Shown here one piece after another: positions 10-55,571 of a stretch of 64,000 nt of DNA; position 1 is the stretch's first letter; every line of letters starts with the position of its first letter. The translations under genes were made by a program, and so were the position numbers. The DNA is from Vitrella brassicaformis CCMP3155 (taxonomy: Eukaryota; Protista; Chromerida). The stretch lies in contig CDMY01000840.1 in assembly GCA_001179505.1 (NCBI GenBank), positions 124,001-188,000 on the forward strand, given 5' to 3'. The notes below the pieces were generated by a model. That model was given only the letters and a program-made list of their open reading frames with translations, was not told where the DNA came from and ran no database searches.

Positions 10-340
10 CTATAAATTCCACTTTGCTGAAGAGCGTCCTCAGCGACAGGAACTGGCTCCTCACGTCGTCGATGCCTGACACCTTCATTATCGGGTCCTG
101 TCGACACCCCGCCACACACCACACACACAAAACTCACTCTTGACGTATCTCTTTTGCTTGTTCTGGGCGGTGCCTTGTGCGGCCAGTGAGGCCCCCTGCC
201 CCTGTGCCCACCTCGAACTGCGCGTCAGCGTCGTAGAGCGCCGCTATGACGAGGTCTGCTTCTCCAAAGGGGGCCGAGTAGACCGTTTCAAGTTGCTTCA
301 GCAACTTCCCCGTGTCCATCGTCACCGGATCTCCGTTCAT
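10..340 (-). CDS. SnoaL/NTF2-like domain protein, 5' part (runs off the left edge)
   Basis: Exon 340..212 (MNGDPV...LYDADAQFE) splices via a GT..AG intron (211..98) to exon 97..10 (DPIMKVSGIDDVRSQFLSLRTLFSKVEFI). This gives LYDxDAxFEDP..V.G.D.VR.QF, typical of SnoaL-like proteins. The next donor GTACGT is at 9. Confidence 0.6.
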
Positions 341-530
341 CGTGGCGTCCTCTCGAGAAAAAAAAGGTGAACAAAAGCTCGCCACATCTAAGCTCGCGGG
401 ACGTAGGGTCTTCGCTAAACACAGGTGAAAGGTGCTCTCGGAACGCCATGAGATGAAGGCGAGTGGAGCAATCATTCGACATTTGAGATAACACGGCGCC
501 GCCCTTCCCCGTTACCGGCATTCGACGTTC

Positions 531-1940
531 ATGATGCCAGAAGCCTTTGACTCGAGTCCCTTTGTCGAGGATGACTTCCTCGAGGCGCTGATGATAGCTG
601 GCGATGAACAGGTCAGAGATCAACACAGCACGGCACGACGAGGCGGCTGGAGAAACGTACGTGTGCATGTTTCTCTCTCTCCCTGTGCATCGCACCCATT
701 CACTCTGTCTGCTGGCTGGCAGATCAAAGTGCATGCGCAGAGGATCCATGACACCATCCTGCCATGTGCAAACAGGATGGTCCAAGGCGTCCAAGAGGTC
801 AGTCGACCAGCAACACAAAACAAGACAACAGGTGGTTAATGTGTTGGTTGCGACGATGCATGGCATGCAGATTCTCTCCTTCAATGGTGGTGGCAATGGC
901 GGCTGTCCGCCTCTGCCTCGTGTGGAGCAGGAGCTGCTCCGCTCGCGTGAGGTGAGCGACACGGTGGTCAAGACCATGGTCACGCTGGACGGCCTCGGCG
1001 GGGCGGAGCAGATCAGACAGGAACGAAGACACCTCATCAATCACTATCTAGAGGTAAGTGAAGCGGGCAGATGCATGTTGTCTGTCATGATTGACAGAAC
1101 ATCGAAGCTTCTGTCTGTCTGCTTCCATCCTTTATGTCAGCCCATCGGCAACCGTGCCGACCACGCCAAGAGCCTCCTCACAAGTCTCAAGAACCAGCTG
1201 CGAGACGCCGGCAACAATGGCAGCAGCAACAGGATGCAAAACAATGAGGTAGCAGCACCAGCTGCACCAGGTGCCTCACCGGCGGCCGCAGCAGCAGCAG
1301 CGAGTGGAGGTGTGCCGTGGCCGCCGAGCACCCCGCCGGCTGAGAGCGGCCTCTCCAAGATACATGGGGACATTGTGGGCATCTTGGAGAGGCTGGAGGT
1401 GGGCAGGGCAGCCGGAAACCGGTGGCTGTTAGTTAGTTGTGTGCGCTTGTACGAACGCGAATCTGTATGTCTGCAGAGGTCTCGTCCATCGGCCGACGGG
1501 TCGCCGCTTCAAGCAATACGTCCCAAGGTGTGTGAGAGAATGACTGCATGCGTCGATGCTCTCTCTGGTGGTTGCGGTCTCATTGTTTCTCTCCCGCGCG
1601 TCTGCAGCCCCCTGCCGAGGCGGTCAAGAGTCTGGAGGGTGTGTTGAGTGAGGTGCAGCGCACCGACCTCGGCCGGCGAGATGCCGCCACATTGGCGCTG
1701 GCCGCTCACGCATACGACACACTCATAATGGGCGCACAGACGGTAGGTGGGCAGGCGGCGACATGGAAATCTTGACCCACCTGCCTATGCCTTTGTGAGC
1801 GGTTTCACTGTGTCATTTGTGTCAGTGTTTGGTGGCGATATCCCAGCATCCACTGAGGGAGAACTACGAGAAGCTGAAGCTCATGTGTCTGGGGCAGCAG
1901 GTGGTCAAGAACTCTACGCTCGCACTCCTGCTGTAAGGAC

Positions 1941-1971
<31 letters not shown>

Positions 1972-2078
1972 GGGGGATGGATTGAGGGAAAGAACTGACT
2001 GACGGTCGTGTGTGTTGATGGTGTGTGTGGGTGTGCAGTGCGAAGATGGTAGAGTTCTTGCGGAAGCTGCTCATCTGA
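531..2078 (+). CDS. Multi-exon protein with a BAG-domain-like helical segment
   Basis: About 8 exons join in frame through GT-AG introns and end AKMVEFLRKLLI* (TGA 2076-2078). Exon 3, VSDTVVKTMVTLDGLGGAEQIRQERRHLINHYLE, resembles the BAG pattern L..LD.I....E..R..RK..V. Confidence 0.55.
1941..1972. repeat. (ACAG)n intronic microsatellite, representative of many (GT)n/(GA)n/(ACAG)n/(CCAT)n tracts in the introns
   Basis: Direct tandem repeat just after a GTAAGG donor. Confidence 0.9.
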
Positions 2079-2621
2079 TGGCTACGCTGAGTTGCCTTTG
2101 CTGTGCTGTGTGAGTCTGGACCGTGACAAGACAGACCATTTGACGCCAGGGTACATCCGTGAGTGAGCCCGTGTGCATCAATCACTTGTAGGGCATGCAC
2201 ACATACGTACACACACAGCACGACACGCTTCGTGACATGTCAGATGGACTCACTCATCGCCCGCCTCCCTCCCAGCCAGCCAAGCCACTCCGCCACAGAT
2301 GGACAGAGGATGTGTCGTTCGTTCTACACACGCTCACACACGTGTCAGAACGCTCCCATCCCATGCACCCACCCAGCCGCTCCCTCCCTCACTGTACACC
2401 AGCCACCCCCTCTCTCTGTACACATCACGCCGGCACACACACACACATACTCACACGCACAGATCAAGGCAGGCAGGCAAGAGAGAACGAGAACGACCAG
2501 GAAGGAGTGGAGTGAGTGCGTCGCTGCGATCGTTGAACGTGCGAGCCCTGGCGAAATTCCTCTCCTCACACGAGGTGAAGGCATGGATACCTCGACAGGC
2601 CAGGCCTTCCACCCGGCAATC

Positions 2622-26363: not shown

Positions 26364-28492
26364 TCAGTCAGCAATGGTGTAGTAGAGGGACAGCGTAGCC
26401 GAGGGCAACACATGATGCTGTCCAGTCCACACACAAGACAACCAACACACACATGACATCTATTTTGTCCATGTGCCGCACCCCTCCCTCCCTCCCTCCC
26501 TCTGTCTGTTCCCCTCTTCTCCTTACTTACCATCGCATGGACCTGTGCGAGGGTCAGCTCACTGCCCAGGCTCTTGAGACCTCCCTCACCAGGAGCCATA
26601 GGCTCGTCCCTGCCAGCTGCCACCGGCAAAGCAGACGGCCACCGCACCCGCTGCACGCACAACAGACAGACACGACCAACCAACAGCACTCACTCATTCA
26701 TGACGATCAAACCACACACCTGTCTGTCTGAGTCTGGCGAGCAGAGGGCGACTGTTGGGGGCGACGTCCACAGGGGCACCTGCTGCTGGTCTGGCTGTCC
26801 CGACGGGCCCGCCTCCCTGATGGCCTTGGCCTTCCCCATCAGCTGGTGGGAGAGGTACCGCGACAGCTGAGCCACTGTGATGTGACCCGGTATCGACACC
26901 TCCTGCACACACACACACACACACAGTCAGGTCAGGAGTATCTATCTACATCATCAAATAGGTGGGGAAGGGGCGGCAGTTAGTTGTGCCTACCTCTTTG
27001 TCGAGCCGCGGCAGTGCCTTCAGATTCGGGTCGGGCAGCAGCTTGAATGTGAACTTGATGGGAGCCGCTGCTTGCTCCTCCCCCGGCCCGCCATCACCGC
27101 CAGCACCAACAGCAACACCGTTCTCTTGTTTCATCATCGCAGAAGCAGCAGCGCCTTCCTGCTGCTGCCCTGACGGCATCCCGCTGCCCACAGAAGCCGC
27201 CGCCGCCGCCGCCGCCGCGGTAGCCGGAGCAGGGGCAGGAGGAGCAGGGGCGACGGGCGGCCCGCCCATTGCCGAGGAGAGCGAAGGAGGGAAAGGGGGT
27301 GCGCGCACTCCAGGGGCTTGGGTGAGTGGTCTCACGCTCATTCTGGGTGCGAACGAGATCCACGGCGGCTGGCCCGGTCTGAGTGCGGACGACGGCCGTG
27401 AGGGGGGCATCATGTTGGGCCGCGTGAGCATCGGGATGAAGGCGGGGGGGCGTGTGATGACGTGCCGGGCGGGGGGAGCGGGAGGGTTGGACGGGGGGTA
27501 GGGGGTGAGACCTGAGTGGGGATCCGATGGGATGGACAGACAGACACAGATGGGTGCCACAGCCGGTGGGTGGGTGGGTGGCTGGCTGAGTGAGTGTGGT
27601 GGCCAGCCGACCTGGAACGCCTTTGGTGAGGTTGTTCTTCTTGTTGGACTGCTCCACCAGCTTCTCATGGTGCTCTTCATACGCCTGTGTGCCGTGCGCA
27701 CGAATCAGTCAATCACTCAAGGGACGAACCGCACCGGCCTCCCTCTCTCTGCCTGACTGTCCGTCCCCCCGCCACGCACCTCTACGTTAGGGAAGAGTCG
27801 CTTGACCATCTTGTCAAATGTCGGGTCTGACCTCAGCATCCGCCGACTGGATATGTGAACGCGACACGTCGGACACTCACGCTTGCTGCACACACACAAG
27901 GCAGGCATGGATAAACAGCACCCAGTCAGTCTTCAGGGGTAAGGTATTCATTCGCTAGTTCCGAGTGAGCTCACTCACTCACTCACTCACCCAATCCGGA
28001 GGCACTTTTCGATGCACGACGCACAGAACCGGTGAAGGCACACCTTGACCGTCGTCGTCTTGGTCAAAATGCCTGGGCAGGGCAGAAGAGAGAACAACCA
28101 GGCAGCGGTGCGACGTGCACATAGGCGTGAAGCGCACCGCCCCGCACCCACCGAGGCAGACGGGGCAGGTGAGGTCAACGTTGAGGTTGGATCCTGTAAG
28201 AGTGGTCATCCTGGAGAGATCGATGGCGACGCCGCTGTCCGAGTCAGGCGCCTCGGGGATCCGAGGACTCCTGTACATGTCATACAGCTCCAGATCTGCA
28301 CACACACACACGCACACACACACAAACCGGCCACATGCATCTCAGCTCACCTCGTTGCTCTCATGTGTGTGGTCTGATGCTTCCTTGTGCGCCACGCTGA
28401 CCTTCAGGTACGTTTGTGCTGAGGTACTCTTCCTTAGTCCTGCCATTGTAGAGGTCCTCCTCCTCCTCGCCGTCAACCATGTAGCCATCCAT
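26364..28492 (-). CDS. RING1: RING1/RNF2-like E3 ubiquitin ligase (PRC1 catalytic subunit type) with RAWUL-like C-terminus
   Basis: C3HC4 RING: LTCPVCL|GILTKTTTVKVCLHRFCASCIEKCLRIG|KRECPTCRVHISSRRMLRSDPTFDKMVKRLFP. The N-terminal ELYDMYRSPR motif is present. The C-terminus IKFTFKLLPDPNLKALPRLDKE|EVSIPGHITVAQLSRYL...TLSLYYTIAD* matches the RING1 RAWUL pattern. Confidence 0.85.
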
Positions 28493-28597: not shown

Positions 28598-28912
28598 ATT
28601 GCGAGCTCAAACTTCCCGCTAAGCTCGCCAAGCAGGGGACTTGCTGCCAGCATTAGAGTCCTCGCAGCTGCCTGCAAATCATATACCAAAGATCCCGCTC
28701 AGCAGTGACCCACACAACCTCTGATCTGCATCAGCAGCCTTCCCACTGCATCAACAAGACCCCTGCTGCGGCCGGTGTGCTTCGCCACATATGAGGAGAA
28801 GACCGCAGAAGGCTCAGTGAAGGCGGCTCTGCTTCACGAGCTCTACAGCAGCACACATCAGATCTGCTCATTGTCGAAGGCGGGCAACTCGGCGTCCCTC
28901 CTGCTTGCAACG

Positions 28913-31900
28913 ATGGCGCCATTTCGGAGCCTCCCCTTCCTCCTTTGCATCTTATGGCTGATCGTCAGCGGCGAGGCGGCGAGTCGATTCTCTTCCTCCG
29001 GTGCTCTTGGTTACATCGGCCCTCATGCCGTGAGGCCGCTGCAGCGGAGGCGGCACCCGTCGAGGGCGGTTTCGGGTTCGCATCTCCAGCTGCAGATGCG
29101 GGTGGACCCGGGGGGGCTGGCCAACGCTTGGAGAGGCCCGGTGCGAAGACTGTCGCTCGCCGGTATTGCCACTCTCGTGCTTGCCACATTCTGCATCAAC
29201 GTAAGCACGCCACGCCCTGGCAGGCAGGCAGGCAGGCAGGCAGAGTGCCCCTCGTGGCTTATCGGGTTGTTGTGTGTGTTGTGTTGTGTATGTGAATATG
29301 TATGTCAGGTGTCGTCTGTGTGGGCGGATGACGGCGTGAAGCCTTACTCTCAGTTCCTGGACATGGTGCAAAGCAAGAGGATCCAGCAGGTCTTCTTCAG
29401 CAGTGATGGAGAAACTCTCACTGCGGCAGACGGAGAAGGTCTGTGGCCATGCCATCCACGCATCAACACACACACACACACACACACCTGTCCTGTCCGC
29501 CTGGGTGGATCGGTACTTATGTGTGTGTGTGCAGGCAACAAATATTCGCTTGACGGCATCCCCAGCGACCCCAAATTTTTGGACATGGTCAAGAACAACA
29601 AGATCCAGCAGGTCTTCTTCAGCAGCGACGGGTCGAAGCTCACCGCCCTCGACTTCGACGGCAACGAATACGTCATCAAAACAGTCAGGGACAACAAAAT
29701 CAAAGCCGGGGTGAGTGGGTGCAGGCACGTCACACCACACCACACCACAGTGCTCATGTGTGTGCGAGAGATATGTGTGTGTGCTTGTTGGGCGGTGGGT
29801 GGTGTGTGGTGTGTGCAGTTCCCCGACTGGACTAAGGCGCTGGCAGGCTTCTTCCCATGGCTGCTGCTCGGCAGCGTGCTCTTCATCTCAGCTCAGGAGT
29901 CCAAGAAAGAGTCCCAGCAACAGGCGACTGCCACAGCCACAGCCACCAAGACAGCCAAGAAAGGTGAGGCTGAGAGCTACCCACACACCGCTCACCCATC
30001 TGTTTGCCTGTCTGCCTGTCTGCCTGTCTGCCTGTGTGCAGTGGTATCCTCAGGAGCCGGCAAGGAGGCCGAGAGCACGGTTTCCCAAGCCCAGATCAGG
30101 AAGGAGCTGCAGCAGGCGCTGGAGGTGTCGAAGCGCGACTCGGACGCCGAGCTGATCAAGAACCTGCAAATCATGGAAGGCGAGGCGCTGCAGATGAAGG
30201 AGCGGCTCGAGACTCAGGAGGAGGAGGCGAAGCTGAGGGAGGAGTCCTTCCGGAAAGAGCTGGAAGACCTCATCGTCAGTCCACAGACAGACAGACAGAC
30301 AGACAGAGCAGGGAGGGAGGGAGGGAGTGAGGGAGAGAGAGGGTCGCATTATCCGTCCATGTGTGTGTCGTGTGTGTGTGCAGGCGGCCAAGCAGAAGCG
30401 CGAGACCGAGTTGACCGAGTCGATCAGGAAGCTGCGTGCCGAGAGCTCCGAGCGTGAGCAGGACCTGCAGAAGCAGCTCGTGGCCCTCGAGGCAGCCAAG
30501 AAACAAAGCGAGGAGATACTCATGCAGCAGGTGCGGTGCANNNNNNNNNNNNNNNNNNNNNNNNNNNNNNNNNNNNNNNNNNNNNNNNNNNNNNNNNNNN
30601 NNNNNNNNNNNNNNNNNNNNNNNNNNNNNNNNNNNNNNNNNNNNNNNNNNNNNNNNNNNNNNNNNNNNNNNNNNNNNNNNNNNNNNNNNNNNNNNNNNNN
30701 NNNNNNNNNNNNNNNNNNNNNNNNNNNNNNNNNNNNNNNNNNNNNNNNNNNNNNNNNNNNNNNNNNNNNNNNNNNNNNNNNNNNNNNNNNNNNNNNNNNN
30801 NNNNNNNNNNNNNNNNNNNNNNNNNNNNNNNNNNNNNNNNCCCCCCCCCCCCCTGCCCTTAGTCACTCACACCCACACACCATTCCATTCTCCCCCCCAC
30901 CCCTCTCCCCCCCTTGCACACACACACACAGATCCGTGAGTTGGAAGAGGAGACCGTCGAGAAGGCCAGCACCTACCGCGAGCAGATCCAGACCAACTCG
31001 GCCACCAAGACCACCCGGGAGGCGCAGCTGGAGGAAGAGCTTCGGAGGGTGAGGACAGAGAGCGGCAAAGTGGAGGCTGACCTCCGGAAGCAGCTGCAGG
31101 CGGTGCAGGCGGCCAAGAAGGAGAGCGAGGACCAGATGAATGCGCGGCTCAAGGAGGTGGAGGAGGCCGCGGCCGCGAGGGAGGCGGCGCTGAGGACTGA
31201 GCTGCAGACGCTCACTGCTACGCGACAGAAAAGGGAAGACGAGCTCACTGAGACACTGAGGAAACTCAGGGCTAGCAGGTAACATACGCCTTCCCGACCG
31301 ACACACAGGCAGGCAGACAGACAGCACACCTCTTTCTCTGTCCCTTTACATTGCACAGTGCTGAGAGGGAGAAGCAGCTCTTGAAGCAGCTGCGGACACT
31401 CGAGGCCGAGAAGCGCCGCAGCGAGGCCGACCTCTCACAGGCCTTGATGGACCTGGAGGGCCAGCTCAAGGCCATGGAGGCCGCGGCACAGCAGTCGCAG
31501 AAGCAGAGGGACGAGGAGCAGGCGGTGCAGGCCGCTGCGCCGCGGTCGATGCGTGACGCCTTCCGGGAGAACATTCGGGAGACGATTGAGGCGCTGGAGA
31601 CCTCAAAGAAGGAGGGAGAAGTGCTCGAAAGTACGCAGGCAGGCCACCCACCCCATCAAACCGAGAGGCATCCGTGTGTTCTTCCTCTGTGTGTCGCTAT
31701 AGATTTGACGAGGAGTCTGCGTGAGCTTGAGGCGGCGAGCTCACAACGGGAGGCCAGCCTCAAGAAACAAATCCAAGACCTCATGAGTGAGGAGGGGAGA
31801 GCAATCACACCCACCCATCACATCACACGCGTCTCGTTTGTTCCCTGTGTGGGTCGCCTGCAGTCGACAAGCAGCAGAGGGAGGCCCAGCTGACCGAGTC

Positions 31901-32650
31901 CCTCCGCGAGCTCCGCACCTCCAGTGCGCAGCGAGAGCAGAAACTGGTGCAGGCCCTCAACGACCTCAAGGAGTCCACCACACAGTCCCGCGACGCCTTC
32001 AGCACCGATTTCAGGCAGCTCGAGGAGACCAGCGCCCAGCGAGAGTCCGAGCTGTGGAAGGCGCTTCAGTCTTTGGAGGCCGATAAGCAGAAGAAGGAAC
32101 AGGAGTACGGGAACGAGCTGCGTGAGGTGCGGCAGGCGGCGGCCGAGATGGAGAGGGAGCTGATGAACAAGATTCGGGAGCTGGAGACGGCTAAGAGGCA
32201 GAGCGAGGAGACCCTCACGAGCAAGCTCAGAGAGCTGCAAGGTACCTGTGGGCCGGGCCGGTGAATCTACGTTCGACATGCATGGCATGGCCTCACGTGT
32301 GTCTGGCTGGGGTGTGTCTGTGTGCAGAGACGAGTGCCAGGAGAGAAACCGAGCTGAGGAACAGGATTGCAGCCCTCGAGCAAGAGAAAGAGGTGCGTGT
32401 GCGTCAGTCAAAGTTTCCACACCCCAAGCCACATGACGCATTGCGCCCTCTCCCCTCTCCCTGTGTCACACGTCAGGCTCTGGAGGGCCAGCTGGCGTCG
32501 ACTCTCCAAACTCTGCAGGCGACCGGTTCACGGATCAGCATCGACATCCCTGCCTTTGCGGGGACCAACCCGGGCAGGGACCCCCTCTCACAAGTGCCTT
32601 CCCACATCGAGACCGCTGAGAGCCTACGGGCCAGGTTCCAGAGGAGGTGA
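28913..32650 (+). CDS. Predicted plastid-targeted membrane protein: duplicated FtsH N-terminal lumenal domain + TM + long 18-residue-repeat coiled coil
   Basis: Signal peptide MAPFRSLPFLLCILWLIVSGEAA, a Ser/Arg-rich transit-like region and a hydrophobic segment ending VWA. These are followed by YSQFLDMVQSKRIQQVFFSSDG...DGIPSDPKFLDMVKNNKIQQVFFSSDG (cf. plastid FtsH YSEFL..V....V..V.FS.DG), TM LAGFFPWLLLGSVLFI, then coiled-coil exons. Spans the gap 30541-30840. Confidence 0.7.
30541..30840. other. Assembly gap (300 N)
   Basis: Run of N. Confidence 1.
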
Positions 32651-33912
32651 CGACGTGACGACAGGAGTGCCTGTCAGTCAGTGTGTCGTGCCTGTTTTCC
32701 TTTCTTTCAACGGTTTAACTTTGACTCAACGCGCTGATGGCTGGCTTGGCCCTGTTCATGCGCGCATGGCCGGCCCTTCCTGATTACCCCCTCCCTCCCT
32801 CACTCCCCCCGTTTCAGTCGATATGAATTGGTGTAGTGAGGGCTGAGTGGGTCGGTATGTATGGATCGCAAAGCTTAGGAGGCCTGGAGACTGACTGACT
32901 TTGAGATGAGATATTGTCGTCGTTGCAAGGCAGTCCAGTTTTGCCCTGTCTGTCTCTCTACCCATCCATCCATCCATCCATTCCTCTATCTATCGCACGG
33001 ACCCTGCTGCTGGTTCTTCCTGCACTGATCGATGAGTGAGAGTGAGGGGCCGCTGGCTGCGCGTGAGGTGATTGATGCAGCTCAGCCACCTGAGAGAGAG
33101 AGAGAGAGAGAGAGAGAGGGGGAGGTGCAATGGCTGCAATGTCTTCGCGGCGAGTGAATTGATGTATGGATTATTGACTGCAATTTGTGTGTGTGTGTGT
33201 GTGTCTGTCAGGAGGGATCGTACTGTACAGCACTTACTGACTTCCTTCCCTGGCTGGCCGTCCTGCGTGCGTGCGTGCGTCTGTGAGTGCCCCCCGTCTG
33301 CCTGTCTCTCTCTGTCTGTCTCTACTCTGCCCTGACCTGTCTCCCTCCCTCTTCATTGCACACACACGTGCAGCAAAAACACGCACTCGCTCGGCTGGGC
33401 GACTCACATACACATCTGTCTATCGAGTCGATTTTTTCACCCGTCTGCACACGCATGACATGTGTGCCTGTCTGCCTGCTGAGGATGCTGGTGCTCGTCG
33501 TGTTGACACTATAGCGTGATGATGATGATGACGATTCAACTCTGATTCTCTTCCTTCTCTCCCTTCCCAAATCATCACCTCTGCCGCAGCTGTAGGCAAT
33601 GGTTGCAATGTCGTCACGGAGGGTTAAGTACTGCTGACTCATCCCGTGTTTGCAGTGACAACGAGCACTTCTTCATCCAAACACCCACCCACCCACCCAC
33701 CCACCCACACACACACGTGTCCACATTTGCAGACATGAATGTCCGCGGCCAGCACAGTACGCTATTTTACTCGAGAGGAGATCTATCGGCTCACCCGCAG
33801 ACAGTCCAGCAAATGGCACACACATGAAGATGTCAGGAAGACACACACACACATACACGCGCACACAGAAGATGACACGAAGGCAGGGAGGGGAAGGGAT
33901 AGAGAGGCTCAC

Positions 33913-42885: not shown

Positions 42886-45800
42886 ATGTCGCAGCCCCCG
42901 CAGCGTCCGCTCGCCCCCCGCCCTGTCGCCACGACACCTCACGGGATGGCGGGCGGTGCTGGCGATGGCGCATCGGCGCAGAGGCCGCCTTCTGCGTACC
43001 CTCAGCTGACGCCGACTAGTGGTGAGCGAAAGCGACGGGGGAGGGGGCAGAGGAAGGGTGAAAACGGCCAGATCTGACGGTGCATTCGTCGTTTTGCGTT
43101 GTGGATGGTCAGGTTATGGACACCCTGGTGCGAACCTGCCCGCTGGGTTCGTCGCTGGTCGCCCTGCGGCTGCCAACCTGCAGCCATACCGTACGCACGA
43201 AAAAAGGAAGGCGCGGCGCTCTGCACAACACGGGAAAACATCTTTCCCTGTTTGTTGTGGTGTTGTGTTGCTGTGTGCAGGTCGTGCATATCCTCAGTCG
43301 CAAGATCTGTCGGGCATGGCGCCGCACAGTGCTCAGAACCTCACGATGCCCGCTCCCCCTCGCACGCCACAGCCCACCAAGACGGGCCCGCCGCCCCCAC
43401 AGCTCACCGCCACGGGCTCCCACTCGACGCTCCCGCGCAACCCCGTGCCCAACATGATCCAGTACACCAACACCGCAGCCACCGCACAGAGGCCCCTATA
43501 CCTCCCCGACGCACACGCATCCTACGACCCCAAACCCAAGCAGAGGCCCTTCCACCCCCAACAGCAGCAGCATCAGCAGCAGCGCGTGGGGTTCTTCCAG
43601 GCGCCGTGGCTGGCCATGAAGAGGGGCCTGGGGTTAGGCGGCGGGCCGGGCACACAGGGGCAGGGCGAGACCACCCCAGTGCCCTTCATGCTGCCGTGGG
43701 TCGGGGGCGGGGGCGGCCATCCGGTGCGGCCGCCACAGCACCAGTACCAGCAGCTGATGCATCAGAACCAGCAGGTGACCGGCCGTGGGACGCTCCCGGC
43801 CATGATGCCGCAGCAACTGCAGAAGAAACAAGGGGGCGGAGGGATAGCGATGCCGGGCACCATGGGCATGGGAGTAGGTGGTGGGATGGGTATGGGTATG
43901 GGTGGTGGGATTGGGCCGGCGCGGAGCTACTTGCCGCCCCCTACGCACCCCCAGGGCCCGCCGGTGATGGTCAGGGACCAGCACCACGTGCTGCCGGCCG
44001 CGGGGGTCATCTACAGCAACCCGGCCCCCAACACCGTCGGCGCCATCATTCGTGAGGAGGGAAGCGAGCAGGACGACACCAACATGACCAACGGCGGCCT
44101 CGTCACGCCCCTGAGCAACCTCGTCGCCCACCAACAGCAGCAGCAGCAGCAGCAGGACGGGGGCAGCATCGACACCACGGGCGTCCCCAGCAAGCCGCCC
44201 CAGGGCGGCGCGCGCATCCCCCGCGACCACAGCACCATCCGGCATGAGATAGAGGCCTTCCAGATCAACCAGGACAGCCACACACAGGCGGTCCTCAAGA
44301 GCGAGGCCACGCGCGACATTCGCATCAAGAAGAAACAGCACCAGAAGGGCAAGACGCGCTCGGCGGGCATCTCACCTGAGCTGCAGGAGCACATGGGCAA
44401 GGTGATGCGGGGCGAGAAGGGGGCCAAGCCCGGTGTGGGTGTGGGTGTGGGTGAGGGAGAGGAGGGCATAGAGGAGGAGGAGGGGGACAAACAGGGTGGG
44501 GGGAAGGGTAGCCTTAGCTCGGGTGTGGGTGTGTTGTTGCCGGAGCGGCCCACCCAGCCGCCCCCGCCCCTCTACGAGGAGGGGGAGGAGGACAACGACG
44601 ACGAGGACGAAGAGGACGATTACGAGGAGGACCAGAAAGACAACCGCCAATACAGACCCCCAATCGGTGAGTGAGGCACACAGAGAGAGGGGGGGGGAGA
44701 CCATCCATCCATCCATCCATGTGTCTGTGTGTGTGTGCGTGTGTGTGTGTGTGCTCAGGTCCGATGAAGGTGCCGTGTCTGCCCTTCCAGCGTGAGTTCG
44801 GGGCCAACCTCCGCGTGCCGGGGATGGGGGCGTCGTCCTCCTCGTCGTCGTCGCGTGGCCGTGGGTGGCGCAACCAGCCGCCCCTACCCAACATGGACCA
44901 GGTCGGTCTCAGTGGCACTGAGGGAGGGAGGGGAGAGGGGGAACATTGTGTATGGTGGTGTGTGGTGTGTGTGTGGTGTGTGGCTGGTCAGATGCGTTCC
45001 GAGAGCGAGTACTATCGCCAGCAGTTGTCGGAGAGGTCATGCNNNNNNNNNNNNNNNNNNNNNNNNNNNNNNNNNNNNNNNNNNNNNNNNNNNNNNNNNN
45101 NNNNNNNNNNNNNNNNNNNNNNNNNNNNNNNNNNNNNNNNNNNNNNNNNNNNNNNNNNNNNNNNNNNNNNNNNNNNNNNNNNNNNNNNNNNNNNNNNNNN
45201 NNNNNNNNNNNNNNNNNNNNNNNNNNNNNNNNNNNNNNNNNNNNNNNNNNNNNNNNNNNNNNNNNNNNNNNNNNNNNNNNNNNNNNNNNNNNNNNNNNNN
45301 NNNNNNNNNNNNNNNNNNNNNNNNNNNNNNNNNNNNNNNNNNCACCCACACCCACAGCCAACACACCACACCACAACCCCCCTCTGTCTCCCCCTCTCTC
45401 CCTCTCGTGTGCAGTGACCAGCAGGTGGCCATGCTGCAGGCCCAGCTCAAGCAGCTCAAGGCCCGACGTGGCCGTGGGGAGCATGACCTGGGCGACGAGC
45501 CGGCCCTGGAGACCAACCTCAACACGGACCTCGAGAAGGCCACTGAACAGCTCAACCAGTTCAGAGAGGAGTGCTTCAAGAAAGACCGGGTAGGTCAAAT
45601 CGTCGTAGAGAGGGAGAGAGAGAGACGGAGGGATGTGTGGTCTCTCTCTGTCTCTGTGTGTGTTTCTGTGTGATGAAAGGCCCTCGAGAAGAGCCGCCGC
45701 GACATCGATGAGCAGAGCAAGGTTGGGGGCATCCATCTATCCATCCATCCATCCATGTGTGTGTGTGTTTGCAGCGTTTGAAGCAGTTGGAGCTCCGCAA

Positions 45801-55271: not shown

Positions 55272-55571
55272 NNNNNNNNNNNNNNNNNNNNNNNNNNNNN
55301 NNNNNNNNNNNNNNNNNNNNNNNNNNNNNNNNNNNNNNNNNNNNNNNNNNNNNNNNNNNNNNNNNNNNNNNNNNNNNNNNNNNNNNNNNNNNNNNNNNNN
55401 NNNNNNNNNNNNNNNNNNNNNNNNNNNNNNNNNNNNNNNNNNNNNNNNNNNNNNNNNNNNNNNNNNNNNNNNNNNNNNNNNNNNNNNNNNNNNNNNNNNN
55501 NNNNNNNNNNNNNNNNNNNNNNNNNNNNNNNNNNNNNNNNNNNNNNNNNNNNNNNNNNNNNNNNNNNNNNN
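55272..55571. other. Assembly gap (300 N)
   Basis: Run of N. Confidence 1.

Follow-up and report, generated by a model that had tools for sequence, protein, structure and literature searches.

A predicted chimeric gene of Vitrella brassicaformis joining FtsH-derived membrane exons to a helical repeat rod

Introduction

Can the N-terminal membrane module of an FtsH protease be kept once the enzyme itself is gone? The question is raised by a locus of Vitrella brassicaformis CCMP3155, one of the chromerids, the closest photosynthetic relatives of apicomplexan parasites. The locus lies on contig CDMY01000840.1 (C840) of a 72.7-Mb assembly of 1064 contigs (GCA_001179505.1), within a 64-kb stretch of DNA (contig positions 124001 to 188000; 59% guanine plus cytosine [GC]) that we call the window and to which positions on C840 refer below. 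An earlier reading of the letters of this DNA (the original prediction) had described an FtsH lumenal domain, duplicated and fused to a long coiled coil, with neither an AAA+ nor a protease domain. Our analysis supports a gene whose first four exons appear to derive from a thylakoid-type FtsH and whose remaining exons encode a long helix built from 36-residue repeats. We consider it rather probable that the product is a noncatalytic, membrane-anchored rod or scaffold of the plastid, a reading that draws on analogy as well as on sequence.

Results

FtsH origin of the first four exons

Exons were placed by reading the three forward frames of positions 28913 to 32700, with splice sites taken from GT and AG ends. 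The resulting 12-exon model on the forward strand of C840 (28913 to 32650; Table 1) holds 2439 nucleotides (nt), or 812 codons and a TGA stop, in a closed frame. A six-frame genome search with exons 2 and 3 recovered two FtsH genes, on contigs C393 (E = 4.9e-14) and C477, both of which run on into AAA and M41; the AAA piece of the C477 gene scored 99.6 bits. Each of the first four exons matched the exon of the same number in the C477 gene (Table 1), and the joined N termini aligned with an E value of 5.5e-32 (residues 10 to 224 against residues 9 to 209). The agreement extends to gene structure: the four exons measure 288, 130, 176, and 145 nt here and 321, 130, 98, and 142 nt in C477, with identical phases and a second exon of equal length; the positions of introns 1 to 3 match to the codon, and intron 4 is shifted by one codon. 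The C393 gene departs from these intron positions at two sites. The derivation from FtsH put forward in the original prediction is borne out by these matches.

Homology to FtsH stops a few residues past the second membrane helix, at the phase-1 intron 4. After this intron, the next exon of C477 opens the AAA module, while the next exon of C840 opens a helical tail. That the break in homology falls at a phase-1 intron is a mark of exon shuffling, and we read the gene from its sequence as a real chimera in which exons 1 to 4 of a thylakoid-type FtsH were joined at that intron to the exons of a lineage-specific repeat family. Compared with the FtsH paralogues, this gene had a ratio of nonsynonymous to synonymous differences (pN/pS) of 0.35 to 0.68, and FtsH compared with FtsH had one of 0.49 (small samples); this likeness argues against a decaying pseudogene. 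Within the FtsH-derived part, pN lay well below pS, a pattern that fits purifying selection.

The genome holds at least five FtsH-type genes: those on C393 (50.5 to 53.1 kb, minus strand) and C477 (140.1 to 142.9 kb, plus strand) and M41 matches on C434, C498, and C366. The lumenal domains of the C477 and C393 proteins are 65 to 67% identical, and two intron positions differ between the genes, one being shifted by 7 nt and one missing in C393.

Absence of the catalytic domains and the gap in intron 6

Pfam returned no match to AAA (PF00004) or M41 (PF01434) at E values up to 10 in the eight exons scanned, a set to which exons 9, 11, and 12 did not belong. Searches of the whole window by tblastn gave nothing below an E value of 0.2 for the AAA pieces of C393 and C477 and nothing credible for M41 pieces, the best match being one of 16 residues (E = 0.007) on the minus strand elsewhere in the window. 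Genome-wide, M41 matches were found on C477, C434, C393, C498, and C366 only, and none on C840. The Pfam scan and the window searches thus gave no AAA or M41 signal, in agreement with the earlier statement that no Walker A/B or HExxH motif is encoded. Judged from sequence, there is good support both for descent from FtsH and for loss of the ATPase and protease domains.

The model is interrupted by one assembly gap, which lies within intron 6 (Table 1). Such a gap might hide further exons, either extra 36-residue repeats, which would leave the nature of the protein unchanged, or AAA and M41 exons, which would make it a true protease. The length of the gap is an estimate, and tandem repeats can collapse in assemblies; nevertheless, the 101 nt of intron 6 that can be read outside the gap already amount to a typical intron, and the right gap edge is a run of 13 C residues, like the C/G-rich edges of the other gaps in the window. 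Both flanks are in phase 0, exon 6 ending and exon 7 beginning on a complete codon, and the best tail-repeat copies begin at residues 335, 407, and 479, a 72-residue spacing that runs across the exon 6/7 join (residues 373/374) and continues after it. Any hidden exon would need to keep phase 0 at both ends and to add a whole number of 72-residue super-repeats, and catalytic exons would need more than 1.3 kb in the middle of the rod, on a contig where the genome-wide search found no M41 match. We regard hidden exons of either kind as highly improbable and consider catalytic exons in the gap very unlikely; a gap concealing AAA or M41 exons, named with the original prediction as a result that would overturn it, does not fit an intron with phase 0 on either side and an unbroken 72-residue register.

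The three gaps in the window (30541 to 30840, 45043 to 45342, and 55272 to 55571) are each exactly 300 N long, and each adjoins C- or G-rich low-complexity DNA, which suggests breaks at hard-to-sequence DNA rather than large missing pieces.

The lumenal domain and its internal duplication

The Pfam family FtsH_ext (PF06480) was scored on single exons and on intron read-throughs. Exon 2 matched with 18.8 bits (profile positions 30 to 63) and exon 3 with 15.2 bits (profile positions 33 to 76). When exons 2 and 3 were read through the in-frame intron 2, the score rose to 30.5 bits over two stretches, and exons 1 to 5 read through their introns scored 27.1 bits, both above the cutoff of 25.5; the FtsH_ext match on which the original prediction had staked itself is therefore present. 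As controls, the complete FtsH of a metagenomic alga (L030, described below) scored 28.0 bits, and exon 2 scored 15.8 bits in C477 and 19.1 bits in C393, while the normal exon 3 of either gene gave no match. Low FtsH_ext scores are normal for this lineage, since genuine FtsH proteins score alike.

Exon 3 exceeds its C477 counterpart by 78 nt, or 26 codons, and the extra residues form one block in a four-way alignment. Two 40-residue units can be delimited (A and B), which are 57% identical to each other; against the helix-plus-three-strand segment of lumenal domains from genuine FtsH proteins, their identity is 38 to 57%. The DNA-level likeness that had been reported near positions 29354 and 29577 was recovered, the copies of the core being about 87% identical with a local alignment score of 67 against a shuffle maximum of 25. 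Synonymous sites between the two units are saturated (pS of about 0.75), and the 18-codon core has a pN of 0.09 and a pS of 0.73. From these values the duplicate is old and both units are conserved, and the DNA likeness reflects conserved residues and codon bias; a recent duplication is ruled out by the saturation. Unit B has no intron at the position where unit A has intron 2, which would point either to loss of the intron or to copying from spliced sequence. By sequence comparison, the insert is best described as a 26-codon internal copy of the helix-plus-three-strand unit, gained after the fusion of FtsH and repeat exons. The two tandem FtsH_ext-like units of the original prediction are thus both recognizable, the second as a partial copy within exon 3 and not as a whole domain.

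A single-sequence AlphaFold2 model of the 58 residues of exon 3 alone showed a helix followed by three strands, with a predicted local distance difference test score (pLDDT) of 74. In a fold search of 350,542 PDB chains with this model, FtsH N-domains from Escherichia coli and Thermotoga appeared at ranks 2, 3, 4, 8, and 11 (2muy, 7wi3, 4v0b, 9a2p, and 4m8a), as weak matches (E values of 0.4 to 0.8). For the E. coli entries 4v0b, 2muy, and 7wi3, template modeling scores were 0.46 to 0.48 and probabilities 0.69 to 0.93. A small alignment of FtsH N-domains (A1) was ambiguous owing to the duplication and was not used for folding.

Relatives and the resemblance to WD40 blades

A full HMMER search with exons 2 to 4 against 1.84 billion representative proteins found no relative with this layout. 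The ten matches obtained were WD40-type repeat proteins or low-complexity sequences, the best with an E value of 2e-10 summed over 12 stretches, and the top Foldseek row was a propeller-lectin fragment (E = 0.32). Taken at face value, these matches would make the two units WD40-like or beta-propeller blades. That reading is scarcely credible: there are two units only, each follows a helix, and the pair is set between two membrane helices; moreover, the units are collinear and homologous with the FtsH N termini of the same genome and of the metagenomic alga, in which the same motif occurs. The WD40-type matches were therefore rejected as relatives and are regarded as convergent, only the strand-turn motif being common to both.

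In plastid FtsH, the lumenal domain carries a strand-turn-strand motif (here at 29375 to 29430 and 29597 to 29655) that closely resembles a WD40 blade and is a trap for automated annotation.

Word-index protein searches with residues 179 to 380 of a 560-codon read-through frame, with exons 4 and 5, and with exons 8 and 9 were blank. In a sequence search of the PDB, matches were confined to a low-complexity stretch of the read-through query that is encoded by intron sequence, and the best score in the ESM Atlas, 0.81, was at chance level. A metagenome scan with exon 3 gave one relative, an ordinary full-length algal FtsH of 680 residues. The literature searched held no paper with this layout; a Plasmodium paper naming both Vitrella and FtsH was not relevant. 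Uniqueness of the layout holds within the limits of the collections searched, among which Chromera and other close relatives were not included.

The algal gene (L030; metagenome contig Ga0115101_1364077, positions 289 to 2331, plus strand) is intron-free and encodes a complete plastid FtsH with FtsH_ext, AAA, lid, and M41 regions. Its leader ends in an Ala-Phe junction, which we take to be typical of red-lineage complex plastids.

A helical tail of 36-residue repeats

The tail, about 565 residues long, contains about 14 copies of a 36-residue repeat at residues 263 to 761 (approximate limits), paired as 72-residue super-repeats. A self-comparison of the tail by BLASTP gave nothing, and the 36/72-residue repeat emerged by ungapped offset scoring; no significant Pfam family was found in the tail exons scanned. 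Residues 255 to 760 include one proline (residue 550) and six glycines, and AlphaFold2 modeled exon 7 as one helix over residues 2 to 114 (pLDDT of 96). Hydrophobic periodicity had a power of 1.04 to 1.14 at 3.6 residues, 0.17 at 3.5 residues, and 1.74, the strongest, at 4.5 residues; periods of 3.6 and 4.5 are harmonics of the 36-residue repeat. The spacing within the repeat, 3-4-3-4-4, corresponds to 18 residues per five turns and predicts near-straight helices rather than a classical supercoiled heptad coil. Of the long coiled coil that had been proposed, a predicted near-continuous helix of about 565 residues remains, built from 36-residue repeats with a periodicity of 3.6 and not from classical heptads.

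A profile of seven repeats detected three loci only in the 72.7-Mb genome: C840, C486, and C283. The repeats of the two paralogues are 34 to 43% identical to those of C840. The C486 gene (L028; about 56.4 to 60.4 kb, minus strand) encodes a signal-peptide-like start followed by repeats, and in the C283 gene (L029; about 110 to 114.5 kb, minus strand) one open frame runs from a signal-peptide-like start through a DUF4336 domain (E = 3.7e-26) into the first repeats. The same rod thus appears to be carried on three different heads, and all three leaders, as judged from their sequences, fit import into a complex plastid.

Leader and membrane helices

Hydropathy identified three hydrophobic stretches, at residues 1 to 24, 77 to 100, and 205 to 223, and none after residue 250. 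The first is signal-peptide-like, and in the region that follows it (residues 25 to 77) Arg, Ser, and Gly are abundant, about ten arginines being set against a single acidic residue, so that the bipartite type of leader proposed for this protein is upheld. The other two correspond to membrane helices at about residues 80 to 98, before the lumenal part, and 205 to 224, after it, arranged as in FtsH and with basic residues flanking their stromal ends. The original prediction had counted a single transmembrane segment, which is corrected here to two.

Coherence of the gene model

All 11 introns have GT-AG ends, and 10 of the 11 are 72 to 109 nt long. The GC content was 0.81 at third codon positions (GC3) and 0.41 at second positions (GC2) over the whole gene, with per-exon GC3 values of 0.67 to 0.88; this is the coding signature expected for the GC-rich Vitrella genome. 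The model could nevertheless be an artefact in which a decaying 5' fragment of a duplicated FtsH gene lies upstream of an independent coiled-coil gene or in which the scaffold was wrongly joined at the gap. No RNA or annotation support was found for it, an assembly gap lies inside it, and introns 1 to 4, as stop-free multiples of three, make the long frame look better than it might be. On the other hand, exons 4 and 5 are separated by an intron of only 78 nt that is itself stop-free, so that they lie in one open frame whether spliced or not; the introns have uniform ends and typical sizes; and the phase 0 flanks and 72-residue spacing carry on across the gap. GC3 values of 0.67 to 0.83 in exons 1 to 4 and a pN below a saturated pS indicate that the FtsH-derived part has not drifted neutrally, and both paralogous coil genes have signal-peptide-like leaders, which here only the FtsH-derived exons supply. 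We hold an artefact of either kind to be improbable. Separate genes for the 5' and coiled-coil parts, which the original prediction had named as an outcome that would undo it, are not what the sequence suggests, given the open frame that both share over the exon 4/5 border.

Introns 1 to 4 (108, 96, 108, and 78 nt) are each a multiple of three without in-frame stops, and a 560-codon open frame (28775 to 30457, plus strand) runs through all four. Their freedom from stops may be due to chance in GT/CA-rich introns or to tolerance of intron retention. Just upstream of the gene, minus-strand open frames at 27979 to 28323 show a RING-finger-like Cys/His spacing.

TABLE 1 Features of the C840 gene model in the window, with matches of exons 1 to 4 to the C477 FtsH gene
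Feature	Position	Strand	Evidence or remark	BLASTP match in C477
Exon 1: start codon, leader, start of first membrane helix	28913..29200	+	Ends on Asn codon, phase 0, like C477 exon 1	Exon 1 (signal peptide region), E 5e-4
Signal-peptide-like stretch in exon 1	28913-28984	+	Hydropathy, residues 1-24	Exon 1, E 5e-4
Arg/Ser/Gly-rich transit-like stretch in exon 1	28985-29143	+	Composition
First membrane helix	From about 29150, into exon 2	+	Hydropathy peak, residues 77-100
Exon 2: lumenal unit A, helix and first two strands of FtsH N-domain	29309..29438	+	FtsH_ext E 0.0019; ends phase 1	Exon 2 (first lumenal exon), E 8e-14, 49% identical
DNA copy 1 of repeated core, in exon 2	29358..29409	+	Local alignment
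Exon 3: unit A continued (third strand), unit B as an insert (about 29567-29686), short FtsH helix 2-like stretch	29535..29710	+	FtsH_ext E 0.026	Exon 3 (second lumenal exon), E 9e-6
DNA copy 2 of repeated core, in exon 3	29580..29631	+	Local alignment
Exon 4, final exon of FtsH origin: second membrane helix (29837-29896) plus a basic linker	29819..29963	+	Ends phase 1	Exon 4 (second membrane helix), E 2e-12, 60% identical over 25 residues
Exon 5: start of helical tail, repeat array from about 30089	30042..30274	+	GC3 0.87
Exon 6: 36-residue repeats	30384..30530	+	Ends phase 0, just 5' of gap
Assembly gap, 300 N	30541..30840		Within intron 6; GT donor after exon 6, AG acceptor before exon 7
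Exon 7: 36-residue repeats	30932..31278	+	AlphaFold2 single helix; paralogous matches on C486 and C283
Exon 8: repeats, the rod's only proline (residue 550)	31359..31630	+	Repeat analysis
Exon 9: repeat	31703..31786	+	Repeat analysis
Exon 10: three and a half repeats	31864..32241	+	42% identical to C283 paralogue, E 2.4e-13
Exon 11: repeat	32328..32392	+	Repeat analysis
Exon 12: last repeat residues, 51-residue nonrepeat tail, TGA (32648-32650)	32477..32650	+	Repeat analysis

Discussion

The combined results point to a protein that would keep the leader, the two membrane helices, and the lumenal domain of an FtsH and carry a helical rod in place of the enzyme. If it follows the topology of FtsH, the product would enter the plastid and insert as an FtsH-like hairpin; the lumen would then hold the enlarged domain, and the near-continuous helix would extend on the stromal side, where the catalytic domains of FtsH would sit. 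The rod would probably form pairs, either among its own copies or with the soluble repeat proteins of C486 and C283, in the manner of plant MFP1. Conservation of the lumenal domain hints at a further task: by analogy with E. coli, in which the N-domain contacts HflK/C (4v0b and 7wi3; PMC13097134), it may be in contact with FtsH rings or with a partner in the lumen.

Several points weigh against a plastid scaffold or limit how far it can be pressed. No transcript, proteomic, or annotation support was found for the model, and the locus's own protein was absent from the results of the word and full HMMER searches; no orthologue was found in the collections searched. The sequence inside the gap of intron 6 is not readable. 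Many leaders of complex plastids have an aromatic +1 residue at the signal peptide cleavage site; the predicted cleavage region has none here, and the bona fide FtsH paralogues likewise lack it. Purifying selection on the lumenal domain, together with the retained duplication, suggests more than a passive anchor, and we infer the partner, location, and function from architecture alone. The role of adaptor, decoy, or membrane tether offered with the original prediction is accordingly conjectural.

The last consideration leads to a reading that overlaps the scaffold and differs from it in making FtsH binding the core function: a noncatalytic subunit or regulator whose N-terminal module coassembles with or caps thylakoid FtsH hexamers or their lumenal partners and that serves as a decoy, spacer, or tether between the protease and a coiled-coil network of the stroma. 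What mainly holds FtsH hexamers together are the AAA and protease rings, which this protein lacks; in addition, the domain is enlarged by the 26-residue insert, which may block its packing into a normal N-domain ring. In favor of the proposal, constraint on the module is close to that on the lumenal domains of genuine FtsH proteins, the duplicated unit is conserved in both of its copies, and the core of the second membrane helix is 60% identical to that of C477. According to the titles of the PDB entries, the isolated E. coli N-domain forms a hexamer (4v0b) and contacts HflK/C (7wi3), and a preprint abstract makes the case that N-domains are important for complex formation (doi 10.64898/2026.04.22.720153). 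On balance, we judge such a regulator unlikely. A more elaborate version, in which a new class of plastid protein, a catalytically empty FtsH-derived subunit, docks in or beside thylakoid FtsH rings through its membrane hairpin and its conserved, enlarged N-domain and its 80-nm-scale stromal rod joins a lineage-specific three-member helical-repeat network that positions the protease of photosystem II repair or its substrates in the chromerid plastid, seems to us quite unlikely. Were the protein to bind FtsH, it would be a natural tool for studying the positioning of the protease in photosystem repair.

With a membrane-anchored rod as the preferred reading, the locus indicates that the N-terminal module of FtsH (leader, two-helix hairpin, and lumenal domain) can outlast the enzyme under selection. 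That it survives is an argument for an independent function of the little-understood lumenal domain, be it oligomerization, partner binding, or placement in the membrane. The gene also offers a clear and datable case of intron-phase-compatible exon shuffling in a chromerid, and the 36-residue-repeat rods of this gene and of its two soluble paralogues make up a small family that may organize the plastid interior.

Among the systems beside which the C840 protein can be set, the C486 and C283 proteins have the same repeat and a signal-peptide-like start, but neither has membrane helices or FtsH-derived sequence. Measured against heptad coiled coils, the tail has the long uninterrupted helix but lacks the 3.5-residue periodicity. 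With the plastid thylakoid-type FtsH of C477 (about 140.1 to 142.9 kb), the C840 protein has in common the leader, helices 1 and 2 flanking the N-domain, FtsH_ext, and the structure and phases of exons 1 to 4; it differs in having no AAA+ module and no M41 HExxH site, in the 26-residue lumenal duplication, and in its repeat-built helical C terminus. FtsHi proteins, proteolytically inactive FtsH homologues of the import motor of the plant chloroplast envelope, keep AAA+ and a degenerate M41. Both they and the C840 product are FtsH-derived membrane proteins, predicted for the plastid in the latter case, that are without protease activity, but the AAA+ module that is kept in FtsHi is absent here, so that the C840 protein falls outside that class. 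The periplasmic N-domain of E. coli FtsH (4v0b and 2muy; 7wi3 with HflK/C) is among the best, though weak, structural matches to the alpha-plus-beta unit predicted from exon 3, a fold that the Vitrella domain would contain one and a half times.

The closest functional counterpart is plant MFP1, to which the likeness is one of functional class and not of homology family. MFP1 is a thylakoid-anchored positional scaffold with a stromal coiled coil, and its tail, when attached to a foreign thylakoid anchor, still went to the thylakoid membrane (PMC10801857). It has a leader for the plastid, a thylakoid anchor near its N terminus, and a long stromal coiled coil at its C terminus; the C840 protein has sequence features of each kind, and its location and topology are predicted from those of FtsH. 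MFP1 is held by a single helix inserted through the twin-arginine translocation (Tat) pathway and has no lumenal domain, whereas the Vitrella protein would be anchored by a two-helix FtsH hairpin that encloses a folded lumenal domain under constraint.

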